64,000 bases of DNA from Klebsormidium nitens (Eukaryota > Plantae > Klebsormidiophyceae), in assembly GCA_000708835.1 (NCBI GenBank), contig DF237136.1, positions 94,956-158,955 on the forward strand, read 5' to 3'. Positions 6,180-64,000 of the stretch are shown here, piece by piece. Positions within the stretch are counted from its first letter, which is position 1. Each line of letters opens with the position of its first letter. The notes under the pieces are model-generated. The model had not been told where the DNA came from and made no database searches. It saw only the letters and a program-made list of their open reading frames with translations. The translations under genes and the position numbers were made by a program.

Positions 6180-9100
6180 TCATCGTTGACTAAGTGGAGC
6201 GGCAGTGAAGATGGCAGCCGGACTTCCGGGGGTGGCGGCAGCGACCCGTGCCTTTTCTTGAGGCGTGACGGACGACAGAACACTCTCGTCGGAGGCGGGA
6301 TAGAAGTACACCTCCTCCAGGCCGACAGTTCGCTGCAGCCACGCAGGCAGGGACGTCAACTCTGCAACTCGTCGAAAGCAGCCAGGGGGATCATTGTACG
6401 GAACGTTCCTGAAGTCGCCGGTGATATCAGCCGATGTATTGAGATGGCAACCAAGACCCTTTGGAAACACTCCTGCTGCCAGTCAGAATGCAAACTGTGA
6501 CGTTAACATGACGTCATGCAAATTGTTCAGCTATCGTAATGCCAATCCCAATCAATTAGAACGTTTGTGGTTTGCTAGCAGCAACCAGGGTCTTCATCCG
6601 ACAAAAAGCTGTCAGAACAATGGGAGCCCTCCCATCCTGCAAGAATGAGCCTGCAACAAGGCGCCCGGGCAGGAGTTGGCTTTGGCGGCGGTCACCTTGA
6701 TGAGCTCCTGGTTGTCCTGCAGCACGGCGGCCTCGTCGAAGGGCAGCTTGGACTCGAGCACCTGCGGCCCGATGCGCACCGCCTCGGCCTGCTTGAACTT
6801 GAGGAACGGCATGCACTGCTTCATCACCGCCTTGAAGTCCGCGCGCTGCCCCACCTCGCTGCCCTTCACGGCCGCCATCAGCTCGGCGTCGCCCGGGAAC
6901 GTCTTGCTGCCCGGGTCGAACTTGGAGGCCAGGATGGTCAGGCACGTCTCCTGCAGCGGAAAGGGAAACTGAGGCTCGGGACACCTCTCAAAGCAGCGAG
7001 CCGACTCGTGGTGCCCATACGTGATAGACGGCCGTGACAGACAACAAAAGAGGCGGCTCGCTCCTCGGTCGAATCAGCTTGTGCAATGAGAGGTGATGCC
7101 CGTTTTCATTCGGCGTGGCCTCTTTAGCACAAAGCGGTTGCCCGAAGCGTTCGCAGCAGCCGTGCATACAGCAGTGGCTCAGAGGCCGCTGGAGTCTGAT
7201 CAATGACGCACCTGCCAGCCACCAAACTTCTCGGCGATGAAGATGCTCCCCACAGTGAACTTCACCGGGGCTGCCGGGGGCTCGGCCCCCTTCTTGGGCG
7301 CCTTTTTGGGCGGCGCGAGGTGCTTGGCGAGCAGCTTGCGCAGGTCGACAATGACCTCCTGCAGGTACGCGTTGGCTCGCTGCAGCGTCACGTCCGGCGG
7401 GGACGCCGCGGGCCAGCCCGCCACCAGCACCGACCCGGGCTTGTGGAGGAGCGTGCGCCACACGTGGTCCGCAAAGTGGGGGCAGAACTGGGCACGAGCA
7501 ATACAGAACGGGTGAGCGGAATAGAGGACAAACAAGGAACGTTGGCGTCTTCGAAGGCCGTGCATCATTTACACGGGCGACTTGGTGTCTTCACTCGGGT
7601 TCAAATAACAGCTACACTCGCACCGTAACGAAGCTGCGTAGGCGATGTCTGGAGAATGCAGAGCCAACGATCTCTCAGCGAGAACATATTCCAGTATGCA
7701 CGCTAATTCAGGGGTAGTCCGCGTCGTTCTGCTGACTACAAGGCTGTGCACAGTGACTGCCGTTCTCCTGGAGCGTCCGCTACTTACTGGGGTGATGAGC
7801 AGGGTCTGCATCTCGATGAAGCGCCGCGCGAGGTCGGCGTGCATGCCGGCGGCCCCGCAGCTGACGCGGTACTCGTCGCGCGCGTTCTGCGGGTCGTACC
7901 AGCCAGACTTGAGCGCCTCCCGGAACATGAGCGCCTCGTAGTGCCGCTCCGTCTCGGTGACCGCCACGTCCATCTCGTTGCTGAATACGCGGTCCGCAAA
8001 CGCGAAAGGACCCGACCGCAGCGCGCCCTGCGACAGTGCGGCCAGCGTCTCCTCCATCCACGCCAGTTCCCTGGGAAACAGGAGAAGAAGGAGTGAATCG
8101 TTAGGGGGCGAAGAGACAGCCGCGGGTTCGCATGTACGACGCATGCTCGGGCTGACTTCAGAAAGGCGCCCTCTTTGGTGCTTGGAACAAGATCGACAGG
8201 GGAAACCCTACTGCTTTTGAAATAAGCAAACTGAAGCACAGATCGGCGCACTCATCCCAGCAAGTGGCGCGGCTGCGCAGTGGGCCTCACTTGGTAAGGC
8301 TAAGAATCGCTGCGTTGGCGGTGTTCTCCACAAAGTTGGCGTCGTCCATGGTGTCGCCCGCGTCCGCCAGGGCGAAGCGGGTGCCGTCGGCGGAGTACTC
8401 CTCTGCCACAACGCAGCAATGGCACGATCAGCAACGGGGATCAGGGGCGCCTCAATTCAACAAGAGGACACGAGAAGGCGCTGCCGAGACACGGTACCTG
8501 TTTGCGATCCACGCAGACTGATTAGCAAAAAGCATTCTTACGATCTTCTCTTCTTTACGGGTGCCTCCTTCATACAGTCACTTGGTACAGCATTTGAGCA
8601 AGACGTGAGCGAGACGTACCGACGGCCTCTTTGAGGGTCTTGAAGTTGCCGGTGGACTTGGACATCTTCTCCGAGTTGAGCATCAGGTGGCCGTTGCTGC
8701 GGAAGCCGAGGGGCCACTTGTCCTGCGACGCCGGGCAAACACGCGTCAAGGCAAAGGCTCTTCCCCTGGCGGCTGGAAACCTGGCCTGGAAGCAGACAGA
8801 GCTCGCCAAACCATAGGGGTCACACAAGACGTGATCGTCGAAGCGACAGAAGGGCCAGACCAACCCAGTAAAGAAACCAAACAAGCCAGCATCCGTAGAT
8901 AGAACTGACAGTAGATCCAACATTTAAGCGCGGAGAGCACAAGGCCGTGTATCCTGGTGCTGCCCACGTGAGTGACACGCGGCTTTAAGCGGCCGCCGGG
9001 CTGACCTCGGGAAAGATGGCGGTGTGGTTGTAGAGCGCGAAGGTGAGATGATTCTGGATGAGGTCCTTGCCCGACACTCGCAGGTTGAAGGGGTACCAAA

Positions 9101-54540: not shown

Positions 54541-57067
54541 TACTGGATGTTCACAGTCACACAGCACGGTCATTGTGACCCGGCCGGGTCAATTTCGACT
54601 CTTCTACGCCGACCGGCCATCCTTACAAACCGTTGTCTTTGTACAAATCCGTCCGATAAAAAAAAAAAACGGTCGTTTAGCTACAAACACCCTCGGTTAT
54701 GCTTTAGACAAGGCCCGAGCAGCGCTCGAATTGGCATCTCGTAAGCCTCGTGTTTGTAAGTGTGTCGGTATAGGCTCGGATTCGTCGTGAGTTAATAGAG
54801 AAGCAGACATCTTCAGAGGCAACAGGGAGGGGGCAGGGAGGCAACAATTGTATGCCATGAGAAGATGAGAAGCCTATGGCCACACTGGCTACTACGGCGG
54901 TACGAAAAGAGACCACATCATCCTTGTACTCGCCACGTACTCGCCGTATGCCACCAAATACTAGCCAACAGAGCGTTGTTGAAGAACCGCAGGAACCCGC
55001 CTCTATCTCCTTGCACCACATTGAAAGTTGAAAAAGATTCGCCCGCAGGATGAGGCAGTCAAATCCGTCGATATTTGCATCTACGGTGCGCGCAGCCCTC
55101 AGCCAATTTCAAGAGATTCGATGGTGTCAAGATTTAATCCTGCCCACCCTGTACAGAAATCGCGAGACAAGTACACTTTTATGTACACTTTCTGACCGCC
55201 GCACGCAGCAAATATCGAATATGTGACACATGGCGCGTGATAAAGTCCACACTTGTATCAGACTGGCAGAAAATATTGTCGGACCGTACGGTCGACCAAA
55301 TTTTACGGTATAACCTCTACGGTAAATGTTAGTTAAGCTCGCCGTTGCGCGCTGCAACGAAATTCCTACGCTGTACCTTGAAGAGGACTCCATCGATTCA
55401 AACTCGGTGGTGTACTCAAGCCTGCGAGTTGGGCGAAATCTGCTCGGCCGGTCAGGAATGGCGCGGTAAGTTACGGACCGGGAACAAACTGCAGCCTACG
55501 TGACGACTGTTATAGTGCCCGGTTTATTAGCCGGTAGCTAGATTAGGTCCCGGCATCCAAGAATGTTCGCTCAGCCGCCTTTCAACACCAAGGTTCCGAC
55601 CCAGGGCACCTGTCGCTCGCGCATTGGATCTTATCCTGCGATCGTATCTTGCCAAAAGTCTCCGATCACTTCTCCATCAAGCAACCGGGCACTTTTAGAG
55701 GCGGGTCTGTACGTGACATTCTTCAACAACGCTTGGCAAAGGCTTGTAGGTTGTCATGGCATACACACGTTTTTGTGTGGGTCCTTATAATCTGAATCGA
55801 CCCGAAATCGATTCAACGTCAATGAAGTCGACTATAAGGACAACAAATAAACACGTGTGTCTGCTGTGAGAAGCCTATAGCCTATCAATCCACGGTGAGT
55901 AAGAAATAAGATCATCATACAAGCGCGCAGCAACCCATAGCACGCCTCGAATTGACGGATGGAGAACAGCATGAAGAAAGCACAATTTCCACATATAATA
56001 GTCGCAAGGATATACAACTCGCATCCATGCAGCCTTGCATTTGCATTCAGTGAAGTCAAATCCACCATTGGGGCCTCGGAATCATCACGCTTTTAATCAA
56101 GGTTTAGCTAACTTCCGTCTCCCGGGCGTCTAGCCTAAGTGAAATGGCTCTTAAGTGAAATGGGAGTTACCAGAATCTTTGTGCACTCAGCAATCAGGCT
56201 TCTGGTCGAAGCCGTCCTAAGCGCCACTAACTCCTGTTTAAGATGGTCAGAAGCGATCAATCTCTTGCGTCTCTACTAATTAAGTTGTTAACGCCCCCAT
56301 AACGCTGTCTGAAGGCCAACAAGTGGCGCGCTTCGACGGCTTGGAACATCAAGTTACAAAGTTACAGGGACGGCGCTCAGGATCCAAAGGGCGATTAGCG
56401 GTACCGTTGCTTCCCTTCTGAGCAATATCGAATCGGAAAGGCGGGTGGCGCTTATGGTGCGAAGCGCATCAACGATTGTGGACAGCGAGCGAAACTGGTT
56501 CGGCTTTTCAGGGCTCCGATTGATTCCGTGACAGCCTAAGTAGGATTCCTCAACGCTATGTCATGGCAGGAAAGATTTTTTCCAAGCATCGAGACCTCTG
56601 TTCAGATAGATGTATTGTCTCAGGGGATGTACTAGCAGGTCCGATGAGTCGAGAGTGAAGAACGTCAGAGAGAAACGAGAGCAAGCCTACTATCCGGGTT
56701 AGTAGTCTCGTTTGCGCTCTTCGACGATTGCCAGCGGTTAGATGATAGCCCAACACTTGATACGTTTGCACGGCAACTCAGAGCACGCGAGCCAGCTTGA
56801 GCCATGTGCCAATTGAAAGCCTTCAGATTTGTTAAATCACGGGCCCCGGCCGCGCGATGTCATTAATGCATCATGCAGTGATCCATCACCACCCGGCCGG
56901 CGCGCGTTGCATGTGCTTGTGCCAATCCGTTATACTAGCCTAGACGATCAAGCAGAGTCCTAGGCTTTGGCAGTGCCACGGTGCCCGCATTCTGCGGGGC
57001 GGCCGGCCATACATATGCACTTACTCATGGTGGACGTGCCGCACCCTTTCGTGCAATCACACGAGGA

Positions 57068-57145
57068 CAGATCCGGTTATCCACGCTATCCAGATCCACG
57101 CTATCCACGCTATCCAGATCCACGCTATCCACGTTATCCAGATCC
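57068..57145. repeat. Minisatellite of about three 24-bp units built from ATCCACGCT and ATCCAG subunits
   Basis: ..CCACGCTATCCAGATCCACGCTATCCACGCTATCCAGATCCACGCTATCCACGTTATCCAGATCC.. Confidence 0.85.
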
Positions 57146-57554
57146 GGGGCCTGGCCGCGGCCCACTGCGCATAATCTACACATAAACTCATGTCCTGCCT
57201 GCGGGATTATGAGGGCGAATCAATTGCAGGATGGCAACCGGCAAGCGACAGATAAGTGACAGGCAACAATAAATTCAGAAGAGGGCCAGAACACGCGCAT
57301 CGACTTGCAACCTGCTGGGTAAGCCAATTGGCCTTGTCTTTACCAAAGCAAGCACAATTCATACAATGCTTCTTGGTCTAGCTCCCGGATACTAAAGCTC
57401 CATTCTTCAATGTCCAGCGTCATACTCGTTTGGATGTCTGAAGAAGATACAAGTCCATTGGAGCAACAAGCTTGTGTGGTATGCATCCAGAGTTGATTTG
57501 AACCTGGTTTGACGTGAACCTGCTCATCGACCTGACCCCAAGTTACTTGAGCAC

Positions 57555-59391: not shown

Positions 59392-59402
59392 TGGTATCAG
59401 AG
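59392..59402 (+). other. Primer-binding site complementary to the 3' end of tRNA-iMet
   Basis: TGGTATCAGAG immediately after CA+A; this is the standard plant LTR-element Met PBS. Confidence 0.88.
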
Positions 59403-59501
59403 GCAACACGTGTCTACGTGAAGCTTTCTTTCCCCAAGTGAGTAGTGGGCTCAAGAAAGAGTGGATTTTGTTCAGACTTGCTTTCCTCCGGATTTCAAGA
59501 C

Positions 59502-60725
59502 ATGATGGCGAGCAACTCAGCAGGGACAGTCAGGGAAAGGGATCAGATGCATCCGGATGACCAGCTCGCTGAAGCGATTCGCAGGTCTGCTGAGGAGCAA
59601 CGTCAGAAGATGCAGGAAGATTACCGGGAGGAATATGAGAGGGCTGAACAGGAAAGGCGTCAGCAATTGGAAGCCGAGGCAAAGGCCAAGGCTGACGCGG
59701 AAGCTAGGCTGCAGGCCTTGCCTGACCTGCCAGAGGCAGAACGCCTGGAAGCGGTACTGAAAGAGAATGTGGAGCTCCAAGGCTCAATGTCTCAGATGAG
59801 AGAGGAGCTGAATGCTTTGAAGCTGCAAGGTCAGCCTGTGACTGTGGAAAAGTCCACAGCCCCTACTCATAAGCCTCAGTATCAGTTCAAGAAGCCCACA
59901 GAGTTCTCTGGAGAGGGAAAGTCTGACATTCGGGCTTGGCTGAGAGGGCTGGACAGGTACCTAGATGGCACTAAGTGTCCTGACAATGAGCGTCTGGCTG
60001 TAGCTATCTCCTATCTCGATGGCAAGGCGCGCGAGTTTTGGGACAGCAGGGAGCAACTCCTCAAGATGAGTGAGCAGGTGAACGGTGGGCAGGAACCCAT
60101 TCTCACCATGGAGCACTTCAAGGTCTCTATGATTGCTGCGTTTGGTGGGGTTGACCCTATCACCCAGGCTTGGAATGAGTATGAGAATCTTAAGCAGGGC
60201 AAGCAGGGCAAGCAGTCTATGGAAGAGTACGTCAGGGCCACAGAGGCTTTGGTGGCTAAGCTTGGACCTCTGAACGGACCGTCCGAGATGGACAAGATCC
60301 AGAGGTTCAAAGCAGGTGTTCACTCAGACATGCGGACCAAGGTGGCCACACGTTTGGACGGATCTCGTTGGACCAGCTTTGCGGAGCTCGTCCAGTTCAG
60401 CGTCGGTGTGTGGCAGGCCATCAAGCAGGCTCCGTCCCCTCCGGAAGAGACTGGACACCCTCGCACGTTCAACAAGAAGCGCAAGCAGGGGGAGCGCTCT
60501 GATGACGTGGCAAGCGCAAGGAGCAACGGGACCAAGAAGCAGAAGGCCAAGTCTGGTGGTAGTGCAGGAGGTAGCAAGAACGGCAAGCCTCAGCATAACT
60601 ACCGTCAGATGTCGGATGAGCAGAAGAAGAAGTTGCAGACTGAGAAGAAGTGCTTCTTGTGCGAGAAGCTAGGGCACTTCGCTAGGGACTGCCCTACTGC
60701 AGAGAAGAAGAAGCAGGAAAACTAG
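59502..60725 (+). CDS. gag: Retrotransposon Gag with C-terminal CCHC zinc knuckle
   Basis: KKPTEFSGEG..IRAWL..YL..AISYLDGKAREFW capsid-like region, LKQGK..MEEY, and CFLCEKLGHFARDC. Confidence 0.93.
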   Translation: MMASNSAGTVRERDQMHPDDQLAEAIRRSAEEQRQKMQEDYREEYERAEQERRQQLEAEAKAKADAEARLQALPDLPEAERLEAVLKENVELQGSMSQMREELNALKLQGQPVTVEKSTAPTHKPQYQFKKPTEFSGEGKSDIRAWLRGLDRYLDGTKCPDNERLAVAISYLDGKAREFWDSREQLLKMSEQVNGGQEPILTMEHFKVSMIAAFGGVDPITQAWNEYENLKQGKQGKQSMEEYVRATEALVAKLGPLNGPSEMDKIQRFKAGVHSDMRTKVATRLDGSRWTSFAELVQFSVGVWQAIKQAPSPPEETGHPRTFNKKRKQGERSDDVASARSNGTKKQKAKSGGSAGGSKNGKPQHNYRQMSDEQKKKLQTEKKCFLCEKLGHFARDCPTAEKKKQEN

Positions 60726-60757
60726 ATGGTCTAAGTACAAGCGAACGGTGCTTAGAC
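60716..60757 (+). promoter_or_regulatory. Predicted programmed -1 ribosomal frameshift signal (slippery heptamer plus hairpin)
   Basis: G_GAA_AAC at 60716-60722 just before the gag TAG, a 6-nt spacer, then stem GTCTAAGTAC (60729-60738) / GTGCTTAGAC (60748-60757). Pol is in the -1 frame and open across the site. Confidence 0.8.
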
Positions 60758-63700
60758 GAGAAACGATCTGTAGAACTTGACCTTGTGAACACTGACTTTG
60801 TATTGCTGGAAAGGATTACTGGAAGGAAGTTTGACTTCGGTGTCCTGCATTCAAAGTCTGATGATTACATGGCCACAGATTGGAGTTCGCAAGAGTCTTT
60901 GCAAGATGTAAAGATTGAGGGCAAACATGTATGGCTGAATGCAAAGAATGCATCCACCTTAAGAATGCTTGCATCTCATGTTATGGAGGCACGAAGGCTT
61001 GCTCCTTTTTCTACTTCTGCTTGTTTGCTGTTGCCAAATGCTGGTTGGCTGCCACAGGGTTTTCCGCAGGGCTGGACTAGGATTCACGCCGTCAGAAAGG
61101 GACAGCTGATTGAGGACCTTGGGGCAAACGGTGAGACGGTAATGGTGCCGTCAAACAGGGTGGTGCAAGTGTATTACCTAGCTCCAACTGCCAATCCTCG
61201 CTCCGAGTTGTCTGAGAAGTTTGATGACTTCAGTCAGACTGTCCGCGTGCCATCTAGTGATGGTGAGACAAATCAAGAAACCGTCGCAGATTCCTCGGTG
61301 ATGCTCAGTGCAATTAGTCTGTCAGGCAGATTGGTCATGCAGATGGCTGGTCGGGTAGCTGGTGCTGATGCCAGTTGTCTTTTTGACAGTGGGTCTGAAG
61401 CAAACGTTATCAGCAAAACGTTTGCGGAAAGGCAAGGGGTGGTTATTCATCCGTCTGTAGGTTCGATTGAGCTTGGGGACAGTCATGTCACATCTCAATC
61501 AGGAACAGCTCAAGTGTTTGTACAGTTTGGAGCTTTTCACAAGTCCGTGCCATGTCTGGTCATCGATAAGTTGTTGGGAGGCGTTGACTTCATCGTGGGA
61601 GATGAATTTATGCGAGCTCAACACTGTATCTTGGACTATGGAAAGTGCAGGGTCACTTTTCAGAAAGGCAGGCGCAAGATTTCGGTGAATCAAGGCGCTC
61701 TAAAATGTGACAAGCTGTCTTCGAAGGTTTCGGAGTCAAAGGCGCCTAAGCTGTTGACGGCCATGCAGGTCAAGAGACGTGTGCGAAAGGGGCAGCACAT
61801 TATGCTTGGAGTTGTCTCAGAGTTTGAGGATCAAAAAGCTGATTCTACAGGACAGCCTGTTGACTCTGTTGATAAAATTTGGGTGAAGGATTTGCAAAGA
61901 GAATTTGCTGACGTCTTCGTCGACCCCCTTCCTCCAGGTTTGCCTCCAGAACGGGAGTATGGCCACACAATTCCAACGGAGGCCGGACATGTGCCACCAT
62001 TCAGGCCCATGTACAGGTTGAGTCCGTTAGAATTGAGAGAGACTAAAGAGCAGCTGGCCCGGTTCCTTGAGCAAGGGATCATCGAACCGAGTAAATCTCC
62101 CTATGGTGCCCCTATCCTATTTGTTCCGAAGCCTAACGGCAGAGGCTTGCGTTTGTGTGTTGATTTTCGTGCTTTGAACTCATTGACCATCAAGAACAGG
62201 TATCCAATTCCTAGGATCGATGATCTATTGGATGCCATCTCAGGAGCGAAGTTCTTTACAAGTATTGACCTGACCTCGGGATACCACCAGATCAGAATCA
62301 CAGAGGAGGATGCGCCAAAGACGGCTTTTCGGACACCTTTTGGTCATTATCAGTTCAAAGTATTGATTGAAGGACTAACAAACGCCCCTGCCACTTTTCA
62401 GACCGTGATGAACAACATCTTCAAGCCCTACCTGCGGGACTTTGTCGTCATTTATCTAGACGACATCTTGGTCTACTCCAAGACGGAAGCCGACCACCAC
62501 AAACATCTACGACTCGTTCTGGAGAAGCTGCGAGAAGAGAAGTTCTACGCATGCTTACAGAAATGTGAGTTTGCCAAACCCGAAATTAAGTTTCTTGGTC
62601 ACATAGTCGGGGCTGAGGGGATTAAGGTTAATCCGGCCAAGATTGCAGCAGTCAATGACTGGTCGCAACCGACCAATGTGCACCAAGTACGTTCTTTCTT
62701 GGGTCTTGCAAACTATTTCAGGAAGTTCATCCAAGATTATGCCAAGCTGGCAACACCGTTAACGGACTTGACTAAGGCAGTTAACCCGTTTATTTGGACA
62801 GCCCAGTGTCAAGACGCTTTTGACGCAATCAAGTGGGCTTTAACGCATGCACCAGTGCTTGCGTCACCTGACGAGTCGCAGAAATATGAAGTAGTGTCCG
62901 ATGCCTCTAGAATTGGTCTGGGAGCTGTTCTAATGCAGAACGGAAGGCCAATAGCGTATGAGAGTCGTAAACTCTCGGGGGCAGAAACTCGGTACACTAC
63001 AGGTGAGCAAGAATTGCTCGGAGTGGTGCACGCGCTGCAGACGTGGCGGTGTTACCTCGAAGGAATACATTTCGTACTCGTTACTGATCATAAACCAAAC
63101 ACCTTCTTTCAGACACAACCAATCTTGTCAAGGCGGCAGGCTCGATGGTCCGAACTGTTGCAGAGATTTGACTATCAGTGGGAATACCGAGCAGGTAGGA
63201 CCAACGTTGCTGATCCTCCCAGTCGTAATCCGGTTGGCCCTGCCTTGGCCACAATTCTTTGGAACTGCAACGGTGAGCCCTCCAGTGATCGGCCAATCAC
63301 AGGTAGGAAACTCTCCCACCATGCCTGCCAAGGAACGTTCACAGCAAACCGTGGAGTTAGACCCTGATCTAACCGACTCCCTGGTTTCTTTGTGTGCGTT
63401 TGATCCGTGGTTAAAGACCGGGTCAAGTCAGCTAACCAAGAATTGGCAAGGTTTGTGGTTTCGGGGTTCCCAGATTAATGTGCCGGACAGTAAGCTGCTA
63501 AAGAAGCAAACATTGAGGAGTTACACGACTCAAAGGTGTCAGGGCACTATGGGATCCACAAAACTCGCCGGTTAGTTGAACGTCTGTTTTGGTGGCCTCA
63601 TCTTCGAAGAGAAGTTGAGCAGTATGTCAGAAATTGTCCGGTATGTCAGTTTGACAAGGCGTCAAATCTGAAGCCTGCCGGCCTTTTACAACCTCTTCCG

Positions 63701-64000
63701 ATTCCACAAAGTCCTTGGGACAGTGTTTCCTTTGACTTTATCACAGGTCTTCCACGCTCAGAACGCGGGTTTGACGCAATTGTGGTATTCGTGGACAGGT
63801 TAACAAAGTTTGCGTACATTTACCCCTGCCACGGAACCATCACCGCGGAAGGATTCGCTGATGTCTGGTACGAGGTGGTGTACCGAAATGAAGGGGTGGG
63901 TCGGGAGTTCATCTCTGATAGGGACCCGAGATTCACTTTTAAGTTTTGGGAGGAAGCGTGCAAGCTTTTAGGAACGAAGCTCGCACGGTCGACTTGTAAC
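60716..64000 (+). pseudogene. pol: Retrotransposon Pol (MTase-like domain, protease, RT, RNase H, integrase), interrupted by two compensating 1-nt frameshifts; partial
   Basis: PR LFDSGSEAN (61385); RT LCVDFRALN, DLTSGYHQ and YLDD (62453-62464); RH SDASRIGLGAVL and TDHK; IN LHDSKVSGHYG..CPVC, SFDFITGLP and FISDRDPRF. The frame changes at ~63258 and returns at ~63511. Confidence 0.9.

Follow-up and report, generated by a model that had tools for sequence, protein, structure and literature searches.

The 3′ end of the 64-kb window (the whole stretch of DNA analysed here, contig DF237136.1, positions 94,956 to 158,955) contains the 5′ part of a Ty3/gypsy retrotransposon, at window positions 59392–64000. 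The Pol polyprotein of this element begins with a degenerate domain related to the DNA N6-adenine methyltransferase Dam (Pfam family PF05869), positioned between the gag/pol frame change and the aspartic protease. The features of the element, in window coordinates, are as follows.

59392–59403, forward strand: primer-binding-site-like sequence TGGTATCAGAGG, directly 5′ of gag and marking the inner edge of the 5′ long terminal repeat (LTR)
59445–60725, forward strand: gag open reading frame (ORF), with the first ATG at 59502 and the stop codon TAG at 60723–60725
60651–60692, forward strand: CCHC zinc knuckle of Gag
60686 onward, forward strand: open Pol frame, −1 relative to gag
60716–60722, forward strand: candidate −1 slippery heptamer G GAA AAC, abutting the gag stop codon
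60773–61210, forward strand: degenerate Dam-like domain (PF05869-derived methyltransferase fold) at the Pol N-terminus, identified by an AlphaFold2 model, fold matches, transitive homology, and hhalign
60830–60844, forward strand: FDFGV, counterpart of the family F-[TD]-L-D-A strand (YDLDA in phage T1 Dam), with Asp replaced by Gly and Ala by Val
60926–60949, forward strand: HVWLNAKN, motif IV, in which NAKN replaces NPP[FY]
61013–61024, forward strand: TSAC, near-invariant family-wide and kept in this copy, at the start of the strand that follows the long helix
61211–61348, forward strand: weakly conserved linker joining the Dam-like domain to the protease
61349–61615, forward strand: aspartic protease (Pol residues 189–277; FDSGS at 61382–61396)
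62123–62608, forward strand: reverse transcriptase (RT; Pol residues 447–608; RVT_1, E = 1e-35; YLDD at 62453–62464)
62795–63169, forward strand: RNase H (Pol residues 671–795; RT_RNaseH, E = 7.5e-31)
63365–64000, forward strand: broken RNase H-integrase junction, then the first part of the integrase, truncated where the window stops

A first-pass annotation of this DNA had proposed that Pol begins with a degenerate Dam-like domain. The peptide that it quoted is encoded by 60716–61210 in the Pol frame, and motif IV lies exactly where it was placed, with NAKN at 60938–60949. Its estimate of about 140 aa between the frame change and the protease is too low: the gap is ~185 aa and is made up of a folded block of ~145 aa and a linker of ~45 aa.

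Direct searches do not connect the window domain to a known family. Pfam, PHROGs, and NCBIfam yielded nothing meaningful for the window domain or its 14 nearest relatives; in particular, the PF05869 hidden Markov model (HMM), which has a gathering score of 28.1 bits, gave no match at E ≤ 10 for any of these sequences. The 14 relatives (P0001–P0014) are metagenomic chromovirus Pols found by word-indexed searches, and a sequence-profile search of the PDB with their alignment (A2) returned noise only. Their N-termini are 28–36% identical to the window domain and have the motifs GKHVWLNA, TSAC, VPKG, and RVLYLA in common with it; NPP[FY] is present in none of the 14. Metagenomic relatives trace to ENA ERZ27253114, ERZ26165376, and ERZ25039476 and to Logan SRR23617307.

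When 1.84 billion proteins were searched exhaustively with A2 (hmmsearch), 139 matched at E ≤ 1e-3, and these matches link the window domain to Dam. Motif IV is graded among them, from GKHVWLNA[KSNQ]x, through GKHIWLNAPF, GNHVWLNAPF, and GQHVWIDAPY, to GEHVWLNPPF, GKHVWINPPF, and GHHVWLNPPY, so that some relatives keep NPPF and others NAPF, the two forms that the first-pass annotation had suggested looking for. Distant family members have F-[TD]-L-D-A at the position of FDFGV. E values for NPPF-bearing domains in the A2 search range from 3e-7 to 1e-3, and 9 of 10 such matches hit Pfam Dam, the best at E = 3e-10, with P0249 (36.9 bits), P0227 (32.5 bits), and P0237 (29.9 bits) above the gathering score. 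In an 84-row family alignment (A3), 29 members match PF05869 at E ≤ 0.01, the sole other family matched being PCIF1_WW; none of the 29 falls inside the 28-row clade that contains the window domain. In every Dam-matching NPPF-type case the aspartic protease comes immediately after the domain, and P0209 is a complete chromovirus with the order Dam-protease-RT-RNase H-integrase-SH3-Chromo.

The link also holds when the clade of the window domain is left out of the profile. Against a profile built from the 56 rows outside that clade, the window domain scores 79.8 bits, compared with a maximum of 3.6 bits among 200 shuffled sequences, and the language-model neighbours of the domain carry PF05869 and PCIF1. 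The window domain is homologous to bona fide PF05869 members, both transitively and by profile-profile comparison; judged from sequence, its resemblance to Dam is beyond chance.

Phage T1 Dam (L002, 39024–39734; PF05869 match at E = 1.7e-70) provides the closest view of the motifs. T1 Dam has YDLDAAAS, then 32 aa, then KHVWLNPPYS, and the window domain has FDFGVLHS, then 31 aa, then KHVWLNAKNA, the hexapeptide KHVWLN at motif IV being identical in the two. Likeness extends to the KHVWLN strand, its spacing from the upstream F/Y-D-x-D/G strand, the following helix, and the LLP strand; T1 Dam differs in being an independent enzyme of 237 aa that has NPPY and DLDAAA. Comparison by hhalign on the single sequence gives P = 5e-4, and comparison of A3 with 120 T1-type Dam proteins gives a probability of 95.4% and E = 2e-8 over 78 columns. 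The latter alignment pairs FDFGV with YDLDA and NAKN with NPPY, as the first-pass annotation had read the two motif replacements, and extends through the next helix and the LLP strand. With the shallow A2 profile, local hhalign against T1-type Dam gave a probability of no more than 63%, global hhalign was unsuccessful, and hmmsearch found no significant match among the 120 T1-like Dam proteins. Diversity in the Dam reference profile is low, because T1 Dam, used as a query, recovered close T1-like phage proteins and nothing else.

The AlphaFold2 model of the domain, built with A3, has a pLDDT of 91.9 and a pTM of 0.86 and reveals an alpha/beta core in which HVWLN forms a strand that leads, via a long helix, to the TSACLLLP strand. 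The model thus has the elements of the class I S-adenosylmethionine (SAM) methyltransferase fold, namely a Rossmann-like core, a strand ending at motif IV, a long helix, and a further strand. A model built from the single sequence (pLDDT 41) was too poor and was not used. Foldseek against the PDB returned methyltransferases at probabilities of 0.97–0.99, with PCIF1 at a probability of 0.99 and a TMq of 0.50; BFVD returned several phage DNA N6-adenine methyltransferases at TMq 0.5–0.58; and the top match in the ESM Atlas, with a TM of 0.72 over 139 aa, was to a 928-aa cluster carrying PF05869. In an exhaustive VIA-align search, the top 50 matches were all class I SAM methyltransferases. The best solved structure was PCIF1 (Z = 7.3), and KsgA/Dim1/Erm, METTL5, EcoDam (6.2), T4 Dam (5.9), and M.TaqI (5.7) were also among the matches. 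The Dam-type fold claimed by the first-pass annotation is recovered by both profile and structure searches, and we regard the fold assignment as secure despite middling Z-scores, because the matches are uniform and the sequence evidence agrees.

A small Rossmann-like fold unrelated to Dam, resembling it by convergence, would be in keeping with the missing direct Pfam match and with PDB Z-scores below 8. It would have to contend, however, with an unbroken series of significant matches leading to PF05869-positive domains that occupy the same place in elements of this kind, and with the identical KHVWLN, the shared motif spacing, and the hhalign E value obtained with T1 Dam. We consider convergence extremely improbable.

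The window domain lacks the sequence hallmarks of Pfam Dam, namely (D/N)PP(Y/F) at motif IV and the F/Y-x-L-D-A strand, having NAKN and FDFGV in their place, and the same loss extends to its entire clade. In a careful maximum-likelihood tree of A3, the window domain groups with P0142 (64% identity) and P0161. These three are nested in groups of 26 rows (support 100/92) and of 28 rows, the latter being set apart from the remaining 56 rows with support 99/87. Not one of the 28 clade rows has the PP-aromatic of motif IV or the Asp of FxLDA. Specifically, P59 is replaced by Ala and P60 by variable residues (column statistics), the two positions after Asn-Ala varying among K, S, N, Q, G, H, and others; at the FxLDA strand, Asp is found in 72% of the other rows and Gly in 88% of the window clade, and Ala is replaced by Val. 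The scaffold is kept throughout the clade (F11, G19, F22, G52, H54, W56, N58, H71, P80, TSAC at 83–86, K111-G112, and Y137). Motif loss recurs also among the other 56 rows, which were selected by a profile favouring Ala at this position, and some of the rows concerned may be decayed copies. Net charge does not distinguish the dead group from the NPPF-type group.

In amino-methyltransferases of the (D/N)PP(Y/F/W) type, the aromatic residue and the backbone of the prolines are required for holding the flipped adenine in place. Because both the PP-aromatic and the FxLDA Asp are gone, catalysis is predicted to be lost. The alternative is that the domain is still an active methyltransferase, of adenine or of another substrate, with a non-canonical site in which Asn58 is kept and the PP-aromatic is replaced. 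The conservation of N58, H54, W56, and the overall fold, together with a low ratio of nonsynonymous to synonymous substitution rates (dN/dS; see below), would suit such an enzyme. Both prolines and the aromatic are gone from every clade row, however, the variable positions after Asn-Ala are unlike a re-invented catalytic loop, and the Asp has been lost as well. We consider continued activity highly unlikely.

The domain is under purifying selection, although it is constrained less tightly than the Pol enzymes. Identity to relatives is 32% for the domain, 16% for the linker, and 45–75% for protease, RT, and RNase H. The Nei–Gojobori dN/dS of the domain, which the first-pass annotation had proposed to check against a value of 1, is 0.12 (P0001/P0002), 0.10 (P0005/P0006), and 0.18 (P0001/P0005) for pairs in a sister lineage, and 0.16 for window/P0142, where dS is near saturation; across the four comparisons dS is 0.9–1.7. 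The dN/dS of RT is 0.02–0.07.

These values bear on whether the domain is instead a functionless relic, drifting to loss and conserved only through the youth of its copies. The domain is the least conserved folded part of Pol, and the window copy is decayed downstream. In addition, near-identical copies from three other runs differ in the domain by 8 nonsynonymous and 5 synonymous changes, compared with 5 and 21 in the rest of Pol. Six of the 8 nonsynonymous changes (I>M, E>K, D>E, A>P, M>L, and V>L) fall at Pol residues 109–126 (window 61111–61160), in a hairpin/loop; this suggests that recent constraint on the domain is weaker and that the relaxation is concentrated in that loop. Against drift stand the dN/dS of 0.10–0.18 in all four comparisons at these dS values, motifs kept across clade members only ~30% identical, an adjacent linker that diverges much faster, and the confident AlphaFold2 fold. 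A relic of this kind is, in our judgement, very unlikely.

The position of the domain relative to the frame change is also conserved. A −1 relation of pol to gag is present in all 6 loci examined (the window and L001, L003, L004, L005, and L006), with a heptamer immediately 5′ of the gag stop codon in each: GGAAAAC in the window, and GGTAAAC, GGGTTTT (twice), and GGATTTT (twice) in the others. In 2 of the 6 loci the stop codon directly follows a TTT codon. The gag/pol junctions lie at the following positions.

Window: 60686–60725
L001: 627–648
L003: 200–290
L004: 1338–1356
L005: 224–251
L006: 1270–1303

The heptamers look like a conserved frameshift site, with a mixture of canonical and non-canonical forms, and point to programmed −1 frameshifting. 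The Dam-like domain would then be made only within the Gag-Pol frameshift product, at Gag-Pol stoichiometry. By analogy with retroviral p6*, the domain might serve mainly as a transframe pro-domain controlling when the protease is activated or Gag-Pol assembles, its methyltransferase ancestry being incidental. This would be a sub-hypothesis on the retained function, compatible with descent from Dam and loss of catalysis. The domain always lies between the frameshift site and the protease, in NPPF-type and dead lineages alike, which favours this idea; position alone does not establish such a role, to which we assign a modest chance.

We conclude that the first ~145 residues of Pol are very probably a diverged, most likely catalytically dead descendant of PF05869 Dam, selected for a non-catalytic job. 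A pseudo-methyltransferase is the most likely reading because the catalytic motifs are lost in 28 of 28 clade rows and yet dN/dS is 0.10–0.18; the same observations, together with the conserved position in Pol, argue for a selectable role of the module beyond catalysis. In the mechanism that we propose, the ancestor would have been a phage-type DNA N6-adenine methyltransferase domain, as carried by DIRS elements and by DAM-LTR retrotransposons. In the clade of the window domain, fold and scaffold residues persist, NPP[FY] has become Asn-Ala-x-x, and the Asp-Ala of FxLDA has become Gly-Val, most likely with loss of catalysis. The retained job would most plausibly be the binding of nucleic acid, a cofactor, or a host factor, or a scaffold or pro-domain role beside the protease; the first-pass annotation had suggested that nucleic-acid or SAM binding may be what is retained.

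Several points, in addition to the recent variants and the near-saturated dS of the window/P0142 pair, weigh against this reading. The family assignment is transitive, because the window sequence has no direct database match; the Z-scores against solved structures are middling (<8), and NPPF-type members were part of the alignment behind the AlphaFold2 model. Because the tree has no root, placing a single loss at the base of the clade assumes a root among the NPPF-type rows, whose motif is shared with prokaryotic Dam. Inactivity is read from the motifs alone. Moreover, the contrast between dead and live domains may be irrelevant, because no activity was observed even for NPP-bearing eukaryotic DAMs in Escherichia coli (bioRxiv 10.64898/2026.05.21.726589).

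The element that carries the domain is a Ty3/gypsy retrotransposon. The primer-binding-site-like sequence is presumably of the tRNA-iMet type. Gag matches zf-CCHC (E = 1e-5) and Retrotrans_gag (E = 0.002), and Pol has the order protease-RT-RNase H-integrase, with the Dam-derived domain in the same ORF, as in DAM-LTR elements. The window stops inside the integrase, at 64000; SH3_Tf2-1 and Chromo domains are seen in the nearest relative, L006, and in P0005–P0013. This copy is not intact, although the Dam-like domain, protease, RT, and RNase H are all open. Specifically, the Pol frame has stop codons at 63365, 63401, 63476, and 63491, and the homologous residues shift to another frame (ORF 62958–63575) and then return; the four stops and the frame switching imply that two or more indels have shifted the frame between RNase H and integrase. 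No second copy of the element was found within the window, and none of the RNA runs contained this stretch.

Other observations concern the surroundings of the element and its relatives. At 56967–57259, 5′ of the element, overlapping ORFs arise from a short tandem repeat, read as RYPRYPDP or LSTLSRST according to frame; this repeat is low-complexity DNA adjoining the presumed 5′ LTR. In one contig of the related run X5, 106 bases of the RT region (window 62025–62132) are skipped with GT..AG ends, the shorter side being 20 letters. On the contig of P0005 (L004), a gene at 7229–8248 with a helicase-type match to Herpes_ori_bp (PF02399) lies ~1.6 kb 3′ of the chromovirus, on the opposite strand. 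P0010, filed as [quoted passage not shown], is a fragment of a eukaryotic chromovirus Pol of the window clade, and its cyanobacterial label probably reflects algal contamination of a metagenome-assembled bin.

Comparison with known systems places the window domain among methyltransferase modules captured by transposable elements. In the library searched, no literature linking Klebsormidium with chromoviruses or Dam was found. Like the window domain, the DIRS1 methyltransferase is an N6-adenine-methyltransferase-like domain embedded in a transposable element; it belongs to the PCIF1 clade, PCIF1 being the best solved match to the window domain, and it has been described as likely inactive, with RNA binding or PCIF1 mimicry as suggested roles (Iyer, Zhang & Aravind 2016, PMC4738411). 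DIRS elements differ in having a tyrosine recombinase and in carrying the domain elsewhere in their ORFs, whereas in the window element it opens a gypsy Pol whose integrase is of the DDE type. The Klebsormidium Gypsy-DNMT3 element (de Mendoza et al. 2018, PMC5890265) is also a gypsy element with a captured DNA methyltransferase, reportedly from the same alga; its domain, however, is an apparently intact C5 cytosine methyltransferase located between protease and RT, and it is a separate capture in a separate element family. Pseudo-methyltransferases of the METTL14 type are alike in function only, being folds that stay under selection in a binding or scaffold role after loss of catalytic motifs (PMC4738411 and general knowledge); their homology to the window domain is at the superfamily level.

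The closest known system is the DAM-LTR retrotransposons, described in May 2026 and including a Chlorophyta DAM-chromovirus-like clade (bioRxiv 10.64898/2026.05.21.726589). The first-pass annotation knew of no characterised module of this kind in a gypsy Pol, a statement that this preprint has overtaken. The window element resembles DAM-LTR elements in being of the Ty3/gypsy type, probably a chromovirus, and in carrying a PF05869-derived Dam domain in Pol, and the NPPF-bearing relatives found here, such as P0209, have it at the same N-terminal position. It differs in that its clade has neither NPP[FY] nor the Asp of FxLDA, goes undetected by the Pfam HMM, and occurs in what is reportedly a streptophyte alga. 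The preprint, which screened for its elements by hmmsearch at E ≤ 1e-5, describes a conserved Asn-Pro-Pro pocket and reports no elements in Streptophyta. The window domain falls outside both its HMM threshold and its pocket definition, and such a screen would miss the window clade; screens that depend on HMM thresholds undercount Dam-carrying retrotransposons. We tentatively suggest, as a possibility somewhat short of even, that DAM-LTR elements reach streptophyte algae as a diversified, HMM-invisible clade in which catalysis was lost once and purifying selection followed. The preprint proposes that retrotransposon Dam domains deposit N6-methyladenine (6mA) to secure permissive chromatin. If our reading is correct, what selection maintains in the module, in this clade at least, is not catalysis but the binding of a host factor, template, or cDNA, or else a control over Gag-Pol. 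This would suit a host lineage in which 6mA is said not to be abundant, and would offer a natural loss-of-function contrast to NPPF-type elements. DAM-LTR elements as a kind have thus already been described; what is new is a clade that is predicted to be inactive, under selection, and HMM-invisible, probably in a streptophyte alga.

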